Shown here piece by piece: positions 9,401 to 15,400 of a stretch of DNA of 64,000 nt. The notes beneath the pieces are model-generated. The model saw only the letters and a program-made list of their open reading frames with translations. It had not been told where the DNA came from and did not search any database. Positions within the stretch are counted from its first letter, which is position 1. Each line of letters opens with the position of its first letter. The stretch comes from Octopus sinensis. Its lineage: Eukaryota. Location of the stretch: the NCBI RefSeq assembly GCF_006345805.1, contig NC_043003.1, positions 17,856,001 to 17,920,000 of the forward strand, read 5' to 3'. Position numbers and translations under genes: made by a program.

Positions 9401-12400
9401 ATGCACCCATCGATTTTGATCTCAACAGAAAAAACATTTTGGTCCTTTTGACTATTGTTGGCATCTTTTTTGTCTCGGGAGACAATGGAGTTGCGCATAA
9501 AATAATCTAGTCCGGCTTTTACATTTCATGTCCTAATACATCTCCTGCTGTGGCTGTGTAGTCCTATCCTGGACAAACACTCCATCTGGCAGGTGCTGCA
9601 AATGTAGCGAAGACTTTGCCTGGCTGGTTGTAATGTCATACTTTCTTGTTGACGTCTTTTCTTGTCTTTCCATTTCTCCTCTCTCCCTCTGTCACTCCTA
9701 TGTGTTCCCTCTTTTATGGTACGTCGCCAATCTCCATGGTTGCTGGCAACTGCTTCCCAGTTTTTGACTATGCATACCAAAACACCATGTGTCTCAAAAG
9801 AGTTAATGATATATATTTTTTTTTATTACCTAAGTTATCTATTTTAAATTAATAAATCATTAATTTTTTTTTATTTCTGTAGCAATCTGATATTGCTTTC
9901 TTGTCTAAAGGTATGGCTTCTACTCATCTTACAAGATAAGAAATTAAGAGTTATGATTGTTTATATATTTCCTATGAGCATTAGTAAATTAAAGAAGAAA
10001 CTCCAACCAGAAACCAAAACCAAGTCACTACACTATGTCTGTTGACCAATATTAATTGTGTAAATAAGAGAGGAGTAGATGTGTGTGATAGTAAATACTA
10101 ATCAGTACCAATGCCTATTCAGACACTGAATAAATACAAGCACCTGTTCAGGCACTTATACTTTATTTGGACGTTGGTATTTTACTATGTAAGGAGGTAT
10201 TGGTAAGATATAAATTCTGTTCTCTGTTCAAATATCACCAAGACCAACTTTGTTTATTTTCTCTCTGGTTATTGATATAACTTGTACTTGTAATAATGTA
10301 TGACAACTAGCTACGTTGATTTACTTGACTACGCTCTTCACCTACAAATATTGACTCTTTGCCTGTCAAAATCCATGTTAATATCAAAGCTCTTTGGGAA
10401 AGAGTTGCTTGTTTTTTTTATTTTATTTTATTTTATTTTATTTGTGTGATTTAGTCAAAGAAGAAAAGGTGACCTATTTCAGGGCCTCTGAGGTTGGTAG
10501 GGGTACTCTACCTCCAGATCAGAGACCTAGCTTGAAGTCTTGCAGTTGACTGAATTTAGCCAACAATTGGCCAGATGATGATGGTAAACCAGGCAACAAT
10601 ACAATTTGCCTGAGCATATTACTGTTATCTAACTTATTGAGACCAAAGGGAGGAAAATTAAAAATAAACTGCCAGGAGGTCAAAAAAGGAGTGATAAAAC
10701 TAAATACTCTTTTTACTCTTTTACTGGTTTCAGTCATTTGACTGTGACCATGCTGGAGCACTGCCTTTAGTCAAGCAAATCGACCCCAGGACTTATTCTT
10801 TGTAAGCCTAGTACTTATTCTATCGGTATCTTTTGCTGAACCACTAAGTTACAGGGACGTAAACACACCAGCATCGATTGTCAAGCAATGTTGGGGGGAC
10901 AAACACAGACACACAAACATATACACACACATACATAGATATATATATATATATATATGTATATTTATAAAGCTTCCCGTTATATATATGTATATTTATA
11001 TATATATGTATATATATATATATATATATATATATGTATATATATATATATATATATATGTATATATATATATATATATAATATGTATATATATATATAT
11101 ATATATGTATATATGTATATATATATATATATATATTATATATATATGTATATATATATATATATATAGCAATTAAGGACAACTACTTAATAAGGAAAAC
11201 TTAACAAGAAATCGTCAGGTAGATAGCGTAAAAACCTCATAAGAGAAAAAAAATTTCGAAAATAATTATTTCTTATTGAACATATTAATTTATATATAGA
11301 GGGCATTATACATACATGCCAGGAGGCATTCTACATACACGCCATACGCTAAGAGGGACAATCAGTCATTTCTACCAAAAATATTACTAATCCCACCGAA
11401 TGCAATTTTTCAAAGAAAGACATTTAAAAATATATAGACCTGTATCACAGTGATTTCATACTTACGTAATCATCAGCAGGCCTGAATATACTATAAATAA
11501 ACAACGACCCTGCTTCGCTTAAGCCGATCAGCTAACTGATCAACATCAACGAAGCACATGGGTGGGTTTATATATACTATATCCGGATGAATGGCAAACT
11601 TTTACGAATTGCATTTCGGGAGAGGAAAAGTTTTTTCGGAATAAAAATTTAGCAATTAAGGACAACTACTTAATAAGGAAAACTTAACAAGAAATCGTCA
11701 GGTAGATAGCGTAAAAACCTCATAAGAGAAAAAATTTCGAAAATAATTATTTCTTATTGAACATATTAATTTATATATAGAGGGCATTATACATACATGC
11801 CAGGAGGCATTCTACATACATGCCATACGCTAAGAGGGACAATCAGTCATTTCTACCAAAAATATTACTAATCCCACCGAATGCAATTTTTCAAAGAAAG
11901 ACATTTAAAAATATATAGACCTGTATCACAGTGATTTCATACCTACGTAATCATCACCCATGTGCTTCGTTGATGTTGATCAGTTAGCTGATCGGCTTAA
12001 GCGAAGCAGGGTCGTTGTTTATTTATAGTATATTCAGGCCTGCTGATGATTACGTAAGTATGAAATCACTGTGATACAGGTCTATATATTTTTAAATGTC
12101 TTTCTTTGAAAAATTGCATTCGGTGGGATTAGTAATATTTTTGGTAGAAATGACTGATTGTCCCTCTTAGCGTATGGCGTGTATGTAGAATGCCTCCTGG
12201 CATGTATGTATAATGCCCTCTATATATAAATTAATATGTTCAATAAGAAATAATTATTTTCGAAATTTTTTCTCTTATGAGGTTTTTACGCTAACTACCT
12301 GACGATTTCTTGTTAAGTTTTCCTTATTAAGTAGTTGTGCTTAATTGCTAAATTTTTATTCCGAAAAAACTTTTCCTCTCCCGAAATGCAATTCGTAAAA

Positions 12401-15400
12401 GTTTGCCATTCATCCGGATATAGTATATATAAACCCACCCATGTGCTTCGTTGATGTTGATCAGTTAGCTGATCGGCTTAAGCGAAGCAGGGTCGTTGTT
12501 TATTTATAGTATATTCAGGCCTGCTGATGATTACGTAAGTATGAAATCACTGTGATACAGGTCTATATATTTTTAAATGTCTTTCTTTGAAAAATTGCAT
12601 TCGGTGGGATTAGTAATATTTTTGGTAGAAATGACTGATTGTCCCTCTTAGCGTATGGCGTGTATGTAGAATGCCTCCTGGCATGTATGTATAATGCCCT
12701 CTATATATAAATTAATATGTTCAATAAGAAATAATTATTTTCGAAATTTTTTCTCTTATGAGGTTTTTACGCTATCTACCTGACGATTTCTTGTTAAGTT
12801 TTCCTTATTAAGTAGTTGTCCTTAATTGCTAAATTTTTATTCCGAAAAAACTTTTCCTCTCCCGAAATGCAATTCGTAAAAGTTTGCCATTCATCCGGAT
12901 ATAGTATATATAAACCCACCCATGTGCTTCGTTGATGTTGATCAGTTAGCTGATCGGCTTAAGCGAAGCAGGGTCGTTGTTTATTTATAGTATATTCAGG
13001 CCTGCTGATGATTACGTAAGTATGAAATCACTGTGATACAGGTCTATATATTTTTAAATGTCTTTCTTTGAAAAATTGCATTCGGTGGGATTAGTAATAT
13101 TTTTGGTAGAAATGACTGATTGTCCCTCTTAGCGTATGGCGTGTATGTAGAATGCCTCCTGGCATGTATGTATAATGCCCTCTATATATAAATATATATA
13201 TATATATATATGTATATTTATATATATATATATGTATATTTATATATATATATATACATACATATATACGATGGGCTTCTTTCAGTTTCCGTCTACCAAA
13301 TCCACTCACAAGGCTTTGGTCAGCCCAAGGCTATAGTAGAAGGCACTTGCCCAAGGTGTCATGCATTGGGAATGAACCCGGAGCCATGTGGTTGGTAAGC
13401 AAACTACTTACCACATAGCCACTCCTGCACCTATATAAAATGTTTTATGAATTTTTATGATTTTTCATAATATGTGATGTATTACTTTTTGAGTGTGTAA
13501 CCAAGTATAGTAAGCAATCTAGTGATTGGCTATTTGGAAGTCTGTTTGAGTTTTGTTATTTTTCTGTATCCCTGCTTAGAAAGTTTAGGTTAGACTACAC
13601 TGGTGTTTTAAACGCTGAAAGAATATGACATTCAACACAAATATCAGTAGCATCATCAAATTATTCTGACATTTTAGCTGTTATGATTTAACTCTGTATG
13701 CGTGTGTATGAGTGTATGTGTGTGTGTGTGTGTGATGCCGCTGGAAAACTGTAGTTTTGGTGCTAGAGCTGTGGCACAATTCTACTCGCCATAAATGCAA
13801 CAATTATTTGTCTTTTTATAAATTTAAGCAAACAAAAGATTGACTTTTTGGTACCACCCAATTAGAGTGTATGTTGAACAATGTTGCTATTCTTCCCAAA
13901 CAACACACACACACACGTATGCACACATGCCCATGAACACACACACATACATGCACACACACACACACACATGCACACACACACACACACACACATACAA
14001 TAGTATGACAATAACTTTTACCCTAACATCTAATTTATTCAGTTGGATATTTTATCATGTTGTTAAATCAACTCTATTAATTCAATTGAAAAATTAAGAT
14101 CAATTGAAATTTTGAAATCAGTATAATTTTTTCACTTATTTTGTATTTGTCCTTTGACAAAAATTCTTTTTTAGATTTTTCACTACACATGTCAGAACTA
14201 ACTGTAGACTTTCATACATCATTGAGAAAGAATTTTGTAAAACTACCATATTTGATGGCATATTGAATACACTCTAATTTCAGTAGTTCCTATTCTGGGA
14301 AAAATAGTTTTTAGTGCATTAAAGCTTATGGGAAGCACAGCTCTGCATATAAGGTTCCGGGGTGATTTTTTTCAAACACATTATTTTGGAAAAGAAAGTG
14401 TGTTTTATATGTCATTAAATACGGTATTTATTATGATTTTAATTATTTCATTTATATTTATAATTTTCTATTAATTTTAAATAACTACTAATTTGTTGTA
14501 TCTATTTCTGCTAAATCATGTTTTAATTAACTGAGCAACATCATATCTCTTATGCTTTTTCAATAAAAAGCAAAATAAGTGAGTTTTTAAATGTGAACAT
14601 TTTATGAATATGAGTTTTTAATTATTGGTGTAGTATTAGTATTCAACAACCTGTAACTGTCTCCATTCATAAGTCTAAAGGTCTGAGACATTGGCTACAG
14701 CCATGTCATACTTGAATATATAGATGTAACTAGCGGTAATGAATACTTCTCCTAATCTTAACCAGTGCTATGGTGATTAAACTTTGTGCAACACTGCAAT
14801 GAAACACATTTTTGTCTATGCCTTTAGTGCAAATAATCTTACCCATACTGGACTTGACATACAATACAATACTCTTTACTCTATCGGTCTCTTTTGCTGA
14901 ACTGCTAAGTTACAGGGACATAAACACACCAGCATCGGTTGTCAAGTAATGTTGTGGGGACAAACACAGACACACAAACACACACACACACTTATATACA
15001 TATACATATATACGACGGGCTTCTTTCAGTTTCCGTTTACCAAATCCACTCACAAGGCTTTGGTTGGCCCAAGGCTATTGTAGAAGACACTTGCCCAAGG
15101 TGCCACACAGTGGGACTGAACCCGGAACCATGTGGCTGGTAAGCAAGCTACTTGCCACACCCCCACTCCTGCACCTGCTCGTAACTCGTTGCTGAGTTAC
15201 ATGCAAAATAATACAGATAAAATAATACTAACAAACCTCTGCCAAGGTAACACCAACGTCCTTCAACAATTAGCTGGAGGTGATTTTTAAAAATGAAAAT
15301 ATCTGAAATAAACTCAACTGCTCTCACAAATGAGAATACTAAAAATGAACCCAAACTGCTCAAAAATTGAGTAAAAAACACGGTAAGATAATCCAGAATC

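Follow-up and report, generated by a model that had tools for sequence, protein, structure and literature searches.

A 481-nt hammerhead repeat in an Octopus sinensis intron: probable recent insertion of a non-LTR retrozyme

An intron within 64,000 nucleotides of the Octopus sinensis genome (NC_043003.1, positions 17,856,001 to 17,920,000; this whole stretch is called the window) contains a block of about 2 kb, built from head-to-tail and head-to-head copies of a 481-nt non-coding unit. The block is probably a recent insertion of a non-autonomous retrozyme without long terminal repeats (a non-LTR retrozyme), whose unit carries one type I hammerhead ribozyme motif. It adds a mollusc, and a cephalopod, member to an already known class of animal elements, and is no new kind of system.

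Animal non-LTR retrozymes are tandem repeats of low GC content that encode no protein and have one type I hammerhead in every unit; their transcripts are cleaved to monomers and circularised by tRNA ligase, and they are thought to be mobilised by Penelope-like elements (PMC7229834; bioRxiv 10.64898/2026.07.22.740005). It has been argued that they derive from the terminal repeats of those elements (bioRxiv 10.64898/2026.07.22.740005). The class makes abundant small circular RNAs, and both its integration route and its mobilising enzyme are still argued from co-occurrence and sequence similarity. The literature searched held no description of retrozymes in cephalopods, only an Rfam Hammerhead_1 count for the giant squid (235; PMC6962438).

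Retrozymes have been defined operationally by at least two consecutive units, each with a complete type I hammerhead (Li et al. 2026); in the Octopus block three such units follow one another on the + strand. Mobility is read by setting the insertion against an empty site: the block splits an interspersed repeat, and it is absent from the corresponding intron of O. bimaculoides. Moreover, the block carries the integration signature of Penelope-like elements (PMC4209133, PMC8557442): the tandem is partial and 5'-truncated, an inverted copy that lacks its 5' part lies next to it, the target is a (TA)n microsatellite, and no target-site duplication can be discerned.

Architecture of the block and its hammerhead motif

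In the 64-kb window, Tandem Repeats Finder (TRF) reports the direct arm of the block as a single long-period direct array (11955-13193; period 481, 2.6 copies, 99% matches), and its three hammerheads are exactly 481 nt apart, as a first-pass annotation made from the letters alone had stated. Beside it lies an inverted arm (11169-11956, - strand) of 1.64 units, identified by repeat search, by blastn of the unit against the window, and by alignment. The first-pass annotation had recorded one complete copy on this strand. That complete hammerhead is present, but the - side was understated, as the arm also includes a second, truncated hammerhead. Between them, the arms form a 713-nt inverted repeat (11244-11956 against 12044-12756), 99% complementary, with an 87-nt spacer.

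The unit is AT-rich (33.5% GC, below the limit of 45-50% used for retrozymes) and is a simple head-to-tail repeat without terminal repeats of any kind, long terminal repeats included. It holds no open reading frame (ORF) longer than 41 amino acids, in agreement with the first-pass view of it as non-coding. Neither its 41- and 39-amino-acid ORFs nor seven ORFs of the window have an exact match in the protein collection, and no convincing A and B boxes of a SINE-type RNA polymerase III promoter (SINE, short interspersed element) were seen. The retrozyme architecture proposed at first pass, a non-coding tandem unit with one type I hammerhead each, is thus borne out by TRF, motif descriptor, and ORF scan.

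The descriptor, written for the type I hammerhead, demands in order: helix I; the core CUGANGA; helix II, with one basal mismatch allowed; GAA; a helix III that opens with A-U; any nucleotide but G at position 17; and the closing strand of helix I. Its matches in the window are exactly four complete motifs, all within the array. Position 17, the predicted cleavage nucleotide, falls at 12076, 12557, and 13038 on the + strand, the same three sites at which cuts had been predicted, and at 11443 on the - strand. The earlier stem-by-stem description also agrees with the letters, in which every helix, loop, core element, and triplet that it listed is found.

Helix I consists of GUAUAU, a UC bulge, and AGGCCUG, paired with CAGGUCU-AUAUAU (7 bp, the bulge, and 6 bp more). 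The core, CUGAUGA ... GAA-A ... U-A (C3-U4-G5-A6-N7-G8-A9, G12-A13-A14, A15.1-U16.1, H17), is present in all four complete copies. Helix II is made of U.U, U-A, A-U, and C-G (UAC/GUA) and is closed by the loop GUAA; helix III is the palindrome AUCAC-U-GUGAU; and the cleavage site is an AUA triplet, with A at position 17. The three helices surround the core and helix I is open-ended, which is the type I topology. All 11 core nucleotides, this topology, a GNRA loop, and a palindromic, dimer-competent helix III coincide in one motif.

Chance matches are rare. In first-order Markov replicas of the window, a minimal descriptor found 0.005 matches per 64 kb (both strands), and a descriptor as strict as the observed motif (helix I of at least 7 bp, helix III of at least 5 bp) found none in 3000 random 64-kb replicas. 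By these counts the motif is no chance string, the more so as it recurs once per tandem unit. No ribozyme of opposite polarity was found by Rfam or by the descriptor.

Metazoan non-LTR retrozymes include the 350-390-bp repeats of Mytilus galloprovincialis and the axolotl Rtz_353, with its hammerhead HHR_Amex2 (Cervera & de la Pena 2020; PMC7229834). The Octopus block shares with them non-coding, low-GC, head-to-tail repeats, one type I hammerhead per unit, and a short, palindromic helix III favouring dimeric action; HHR_Amex2 also has the U.U of helix II. A self-paired circular monomer is predicted as well, at an energy that random pieces of the window also reach. The block differs in unit length (481 nt, above the 150-450 bp quoted in 2020 but within the 51-972 bp reported in 2026), in a longer helix III (5+5 bp, with a central U.U in the dimer), and in its cephalopod host. 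Across retrozyme families, consensus lengths are 51-972 bp, 75% have seven units or fewer, and about 43% of Xenopus copies are intronic (10.64898/2026.07.22.740005), so the unit length, the 2.6 + 1.6 units, and the intron location of the Octopus block are ordinary.

Plant LTR retrozymes are likewise non-autonomous, and their hammerhead-processed circular RNA intermediates are moved by the reverse transcriptase of another element, as is proposed for Octopus (PMC4918200). However, the Octopus block has none of their further traits, namely type III hammerheads in long terminal repeats, a primer binding site and a polypurine tract, target-site duplications of 4 bp, a high GC content, and mobilisation of the Gypsy type (PMC4918200).

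Insertion site, age, and junctions

A SINE-like interspersed repeat has been split by the block, with one half left on either side. By blastn, the window contains at least nine further copies in which these halves adjoin, only a short (CA)n(TA)n tract lying between them. In the seven paralogs that were aligned they are contiguous, so the block inserted into this (CA)n(TA)n core. (TA)n now flanks it for 238 nt on the left and 86 nt on the right, and no target-site duplication is discernible within the microsatellite.

The ortholog compared at the DNA level is the O. bimaculoides locus only (CM046607.1; O. bimaculoides coordinates below are numbered within this 99-kb locus). The window is collinear with it at 86-94% identity: 9884-10707 corresponds to 42520-43328, and 13453-14872 to 44903-46250. 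The intervening 1574 nt of the O. bimaculoides locus contain neither the host SINE nor the 481-nt unit, and no assembly gap. The insertion therefore post-dates the split from O. bimaculoides.

Five differences separate the units over about 2 kb, each private to one unit: at unit position 103; at 218 and 263 (both in one unit); at 462; and a 2-nt indel in a T run. (The private changes of the inverted arm are G103A, the 2-nt indel, and A462G.) The units are more than 99.5% identical. As all differences are private, the units were identical at the birth of the block, and the insertion is young. The few differences and the youth claimed at first pass are upheld on both counts, by the private changes and by the empty O. 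bimaculoides intron.

The arms meet head to head (5' to 5') at 11955/11956, with a 2-nt overlap, CA, common to both. Their 5' starts differ (unit position 360 in the direct arm; about 448, inside the CUGAUGA box, in the inverted arm), and so do their distal 3' ends (about 155 and about 283, respectively). Each distal end is a TA-rich spot of the unit that runs straight into (TA)n. Since both arms exceed one unit and end at different unit positions, yet meet via microhomology, the geometry suggests that a circular or concatemeric template was copied by target-primed reverse transcription starting at each side of a single break, in the manner of twin priming. A foldback DNA transposon with terminal inverted repeats was rejected: the outer termini are different unit positions, and neither is an inverted copy of the other. 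Nor is it likely that two insertions occurred independently in opposite directions, as no microsatellite lies between the arms.

It is very improbable that the inverted arm is an artefact of assembly or a long-read chimera, the true locus being a simple direct array. Palindromic junctions are a known class of artefact, and Penelope-like insertions are known to confuse assemblies (PMC8557442). However, the arms do not form a perfect fold-back: the starts at 448 and 360 leave an asymmetric centre of 87 nt, the arm ends differ, and each arm has private changes.

Penelope-like elements integrate with heavy loss of their 5' part and as partial tandems, frequently next to an inverted copy that is itself 5'-truncated; they favour (TA)n-type microsatellites, where target-site duplications cannot be made out (PMC8557442). 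Owing to the youth of the Octopus insertion, its two boundaries with the target and the inversion joint inside it remain legible, and all three conform to this style. The first-pass annotation had proposed that a Penelope-like reverse transcriptase moves the family in trans; the integration hallmarks, on which that annotation had not drawn, lend this support, while the identity of the enzyme and a dispersed family stay at the level of proposal. Those parts of the first-pass interpretation that computation could test all held.

The same hallmarks, being those of Penelope-like elements themselves (PMC8557442), could also point to an alternative that we consider improbable: the block would be terminal pieces (pseudo-LTR or 3' end) of an autonomous Penelope-like element, arranged as partial tandem copies with 5' truncation and one inverted copy, and too short to include its ORF. 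Hammerheads reside in the terminal repeats of these elements and, as in Octopus, are of type I with a palindromic helix III (PMC4209133); many Xenopus retrozyme families are homologous to such repeats (10.64898/2026.07.22.740005). However, over 2.6 units in one arm and 1.6 in the other, the repeat closes head to tail with a period of exactly 481 nt, and nowhere does it enclose unique internal (ORF) sequence. Its full helix III and four-position helix II also differ from the minimal, long-helix-II variants typical of metazoan Penelope-like elements, in which helix II has at least 6 bp and a 5' bulge (PMC4209133).

In the course that we propose for the retrozyme insertion, catalysis and circularisation are inferred, as are twin priming and the enzyme that did the reverse transcription. 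A transcript over at least two units would be made; host pre-mRNA could supply it, because the direct arm lies in sense within the intron. The hammerheads would fold mainly as a double hammerhead, the palindromic helices III of two copies pairing. Cleavage after A17 would yield 481-nt monomers with 5'-OH and 2',3'-cyclic phosphate ends, which a host RtcB-type tRNA ligase would circularise. A Penelope-like reverse transcriptase with GIY-YIG endonuclease would then copy the circle or multimer by target-primed, rolling-circle synthesis at a nick in the (TA)n microsatellite. Priming from both sides of the break would produce two multimeric cDNAs, their 5' ends joined via the 2-nt microhomology. 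Precise predictions follow from the locus: RNA should be cut after A12076, A12557, and A13038, and circles of 481 nt should form.

In L1 "twin priming" inversions, reportedly described by Ostertag & Kazazian in 2001, the arms likewise run in opposite directions; their 3' ends point to the target, and microhomology connects their 5' ends. L1 differs in belonging to another retroelement class; both Octopus arms, moreover, are multimeric, suggesting a circular or concatemeric template.

A bolder reading takes the block for a near-unmutated footprint of rolling-circle, twin-primed retrozyme integration by Penelope-like machinery, with the further possibility that the host pre-mRNA is both self-cleaving and a long double-stranded RNA substrate. 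In this full form it is speculative and rather unlikely. If true, the footprint would be direct structural evidence that Penelope-like machinery copies the circular RNAs of animal retrozymes by rolling-circle, twin-primed synthesis. The inverted repeat of about 700 bp and the three sense hammerheads would, for their part, make the pre-mRNA of a calcium-signalling Rab gene self-cleaving as well as a substrate for editing or small-RNA production.

Predicted folding and the weight of contrary evidence

Several results weigh against the assignment to retrozymes. The Rfam hammerhead models reported nothing at gathering score in the whole window, nor at E<=10 on 2.2 kb or 86 nt around one copy; these searches gave AT-rich microRNA-like and snoRNA-like noise only. 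The first-pass annotation had proposed searching both strands for hammerheads, and the outcome is divided: four complete motifs by our own descriptor, none by the Rfam models. Within the motif, the quasi-invariant G10.1-C11.1 pair is replaced by U.U, which leaves helix II with three Watson-Crick pairs, and 15.2-16.2 is U-A instead of C-G.

A search for the 481-nt unit through about 220 kb of Octopus DNA (the remaining 62 kb or so of the window, 99 kb from O. bimaculoides, and 61 kb from O. vulgaris) likewise found no further copy, and the copies available for comparing conservation and covariation are the near-identical ones at this locus only. No Penelope-like ORF (reverse transcriptase, GIY-YIG) occurs among window ORFs of at least 90 amino acids. 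As neither the unit nor the window contains such an ORF, the block, unlike a complete Penelope-like element, is not autonomous.

Folding predictions add to these points. For the 64-nt monomer motif, the hammerhead fold (-11.4 kcal/mol) competes with an alternative of -13.4 kcal/mol in which CUGA pairs with UCAC in place of helix III. The + circle is unexceptional in energy: random 481-nt pieces of this microsatellite-rich window fold at -114 +/- 46 kcal/mol, compared with -124 kcal/mol for the circle. Finally, pairing between the long inverted arms could lock the hammerheads of this locus into a pre-mRNA duplex of about 700 bp.

The silence of Rfam presumably reflects the U.U at 10.1/11.1, the U-A at 15.2/16.2, a helix II that is short, and a helix III that is unusually long. 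If the models miss this hammerhead, Rfam-based censuses may undercount such elements. The U.U at the base of helix II had been raised as a caveat at first pass, and it is indeed present. However, axolotl HHR_Amex2 has the same U.U and still self-cleaves, better as a dimer (PMC7229834), and the helix III of metazoan type I hammerheads is weak and palindromic, the ribozymes acting as dimers in tandem transcripts (PMC4209133). Since U.U and weak helix III both match published hammerheads, the caveat does not disqualify the motif.

Dimeric folding, which the first-pass annotation had thought possible from the palindrome, is what the two-copy co-fold predicts. Its minimum-energy structure is a double hammerhead at -34.5 kcal/mol, against -26.8 kcal/mol (2 x -13.4) for separate monomers; the intermolecular helix III has 5 bp, U.U, and 5 bp, and the helix I strands are predicted to be swapped between the copies. 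In the monomer, by comparison, helix III has an ensemble probability of about 1.5%, and the local fold is no stabler than shuffled sequence (z = -0.9). Minimum free energies of -13.4 to -13.8 kcal/mol for the hammerhead lie below the -5 kcal/mol used as a retrozyme criterion.

The circular + monomer (-124 kcal/mol, z = -5.7 against dinucleotide shuffles) is predicted to have 64% of its bases paired, and the circle of - polarity folds at -95 kcal/mol (z = -4.4). The structure of the circle thus stands out from shuffled sequence, though not from the genomic background. Because the energy of the + circle falls within the range of random pieces, little weight is placed on circle folding.

The weak monomer fold bears on an alternative that keeps the retrozyme origin: the ribozyme would be crippled and the intronic locus an inert relic, whose main effect at the RNA level would be a hairpin of about 700 bp in the host pre-mRNA. 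The arms, nearly complementary and in a sense-transcribed intron, would suit such a hairpin, and axolotl hammerheads that share the U.U reach only 22% cleavage per hour in monomeric form (PMC7229834). On the other side, the dimer fold is strongly favoured in prediction, and related weak hammerheads still yield abundant circular RNA in vivo (PMC7229834). The units, identical at insertion, are also still more than 99.5% identical, from which it follows that the source was able to produce multimeric or circular templates in the recent past. An inert relic is possible, but we regard it as unlikely.

Quite unlikely is the reading that the block is an ordinary local minisatellite or satellite with a hammerhead-like string, having neither ribozyme activity nor RNA-mediated mobility. 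It would agree with the Rfam result, with the U.U at 10.1/11.1, with a local fold z of only -0.9, and with the lack of other copies in about 220 kb of Octopus DNA. It would not account for a motif of a quality absent from 3000 x 64 kb of composition-matched sequence, in which core, topology, GNRA loop, and helix III coincide. Nor do slippage and unequal crossing-over explain why the block interrupts a SINE microsatellite, why one arm is inverted and 5'-truncated, or why the arm ends are unequal.

Classical hammerhead satellites, such as newt satellite 2 (~330 bp), Schistosoma Sm-alpha, and cave-cricket pDo500 (~500 bp), form high-copy arrays, and the newt ribozyme acts as a dimer. They resemble the Octopus block as tandem genomic repeats of a few hundred bp, and their transcripts self-cleave to monomers. 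In contrast, the Octopus block is a single four-unit insertion, with junctions that point to retrotransposition.

Host gene and neighbouring repeats

The + strand of the window contains Ras-family exons, and a spliced query recovers EFCAB4B/RASEF-like proteins with 92-93% identity to those of O. sinensis and O. vulgaris and 73% to that of O. bimaculoides. The value of 92-93% rather than 100% arises because exon joins in the query are approximate; most exons are 100% identical by tblastn, which placed 14 exons, identical or nearly so to O. sinensis XP_029639207.1. The encoded protein has EF-hand, coiled-coil, and Rab domains (EFCAB4B/RASEF/CRACR2A-like) and reads DHMSHK, versus DHISHK in O. vulgaris, a single diagnostic residue that speaks for O. 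sinensis; its first ~183 and last ~54 residues are encoded outside the window. Gene length is 116.6 kb in O. sinensis and 112.6 kb in O. vulgaris, compared with 79 kb in O. bimaculoides. An alternative 12-amino-acid exon lies near 30330-30365.

The array lies in a 16.5-kb intron, between the first two exons of the table, with its direct arm in the sense orientation of the gene. The first-pass annotation had called the array intronic and its host a cephalopod. Both statements are confirmed by tblastn: the flanking exons are identical or nearly so to the EFCAB4B/RASEF-like protein of O. sinensis and O. vulgaris. Octopus is an animal known for heavy RNA editing. Within the host pre-mRNA, the 713-nt inverted repeat of this sense-transcribed intron could fold into long double-stranded RNA and so might serve as a substrate for editing or small RNAs.

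Table 1. Coordinates of the repeat block, its hammerhead motifs, its insertion site, and the exons of the host gene (positions in the window)
Feature	Position	Strand	Description and basis
Left half of host SINE-like repeat	10710-10930		blastn to at least nine window paralogs; alignment
Left (AT)n tract of target microsatellite	10931-11168		TRF period 2, 120 copies; adjoins 3' end of inverted arm; extends (CA)n(TA)n core of host repeat
Inverted arm, 1.64 units	11169-11956	-	5'-truncated at 11956, 3' end at 11169; inverted-repeat search, blastn, alignment
Hammerhead, complete	11430-11491	-	Predicted cleavage 3' of A at 11443; descriptor; identical to + copies
Hammerhead, truncated	11911-11956	-	Without C3 and 5' strand of helix I; loop II GUAG, not GUAA (unit position 462, A to G)
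Arm junction, head to head	11955-11956		2-nt CA overlap; arm coordinates and direct reading of letters
Direct arm, 2.57 units	11955-13193	+	5'-truncated; ends in TA-rich stretch of unit itself; TRF, repeat search, blastn
Hammerhead motif 1	12028-12089	+	Predicted cleavage after A12076; descriptor, fold
Two full units in direct arm	12077-12557; 12558-13038	+	blastn, TRF
Imperfect hairpin, ~105 nt	12414-12519	+	Unit positions 338-443, -45.8 kcal/mol; directly 5' of hammerhead, overlaps distal helix I; in each unit; self-match, folds
Hammerhead motif 2	12509-12570	+	Predicted cleavage after A12557; descriptor
Hammerhead motif 3	12990-13051	+	Predicted cleavage after A13038; descriptor
Right (TA)n tract of target microsatellite	13183-13268		Adjoins 3' end of direct arm; TRF, paralog alignment
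Right half of host SINE-like repeat	13255-13433		blastn, paralog alignment
Upstream exon	369-458	+	Residues 184-213 of O. sinensis protein, 30/30 identical; tblastn
Next exon	16980-17078 (approx.)	+	Residues 214-246; tblastn
Host-gene exons, first part	17603-17674, 20434-20553, 22973-23047, 25284-25337, 32574-32675, 46233-46496	+	tblastn
Host-gene exons, second part	48376-48456, 51157-51240, 57638-57757, 58536-58616, 61234-61353, 62987-63097	+	tblastn

Within the left (AT)n tract, a short island (10960-10985; TTTATAAAGCTTCCCGTTATA) is not microsatellite. One end of Penelope-like insertions is said to bear a "tail" of 30-40 bp, to which this island might or might not be related.

The SINE-like repeat with its internal (CA)n(TA)n microsatellite is very abundant, and about 39% of the window matches elsewhere in the window. 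Paralogs include 44760-45146, 47431-47848, 50348-50736, and 14876-15176, and on the - strand 47925-48330, 56006-56437, 33414-33830, and 6049-6463. ORFs through this repeat match only hypothetical, predicted proteins of O. vulgaris (61-70% identity); these proteins probably arose as artefacts of annotation. They led to three O. vulgaris loci (61 kb in all), which contain neither the unit nor a hammerhead motif.

A second interspersed family has internal tandem sub-repeats of 63-68 bp (GGTGGCACGTAAAAAGCACC...) and occurs in the window at 3335-3500, 7309-7463, and 9097-9223. Related ORFs lie at 3282-3632, 7165-7488, and 37497-37862, and the family is also present at several places in the O. bimaculoides locus. 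Other long-period tandems are 46911-47262 (116 bp x 3.0, 91% matches) and 62252-62479 (43 bp x 5.3, 74%); neither contains a hammerhead motif by our descriptor.

Ribozyme pattern scans of viral contigs gave no match. A single pattern match in a metagenome was rejected as chance: it is without helix II and lies in what appears, from reading of the letters, to be bacterial coding sequence.

The O. bimaculoides locus has a solitary hammerhead-like motif of its own at 96806-96872 (+). It combines a helix I of AUUGUG/CACAAU, the core CUGACGA, a long imperfect helix II ending UUUUUAC-GUAA-GUAAAAG, the string GAAAC-CGGU-A, and a palindromic ACCGGU helix III. An 11-mer, TTACGTAAGTA, is common to this motif and helix II of the Octopus sinensis motif. 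It is single-copy in its locus and is missed by Rfam; it could be a minimal hammerhead of the Penelope type, or chance. In the orthologous intron of the same locus, Rfam gives a full-length match to 5.8S rRNA (50410-50568, +; 86.9 bits), presumably an rRNA-derived pseudogene or repeat.

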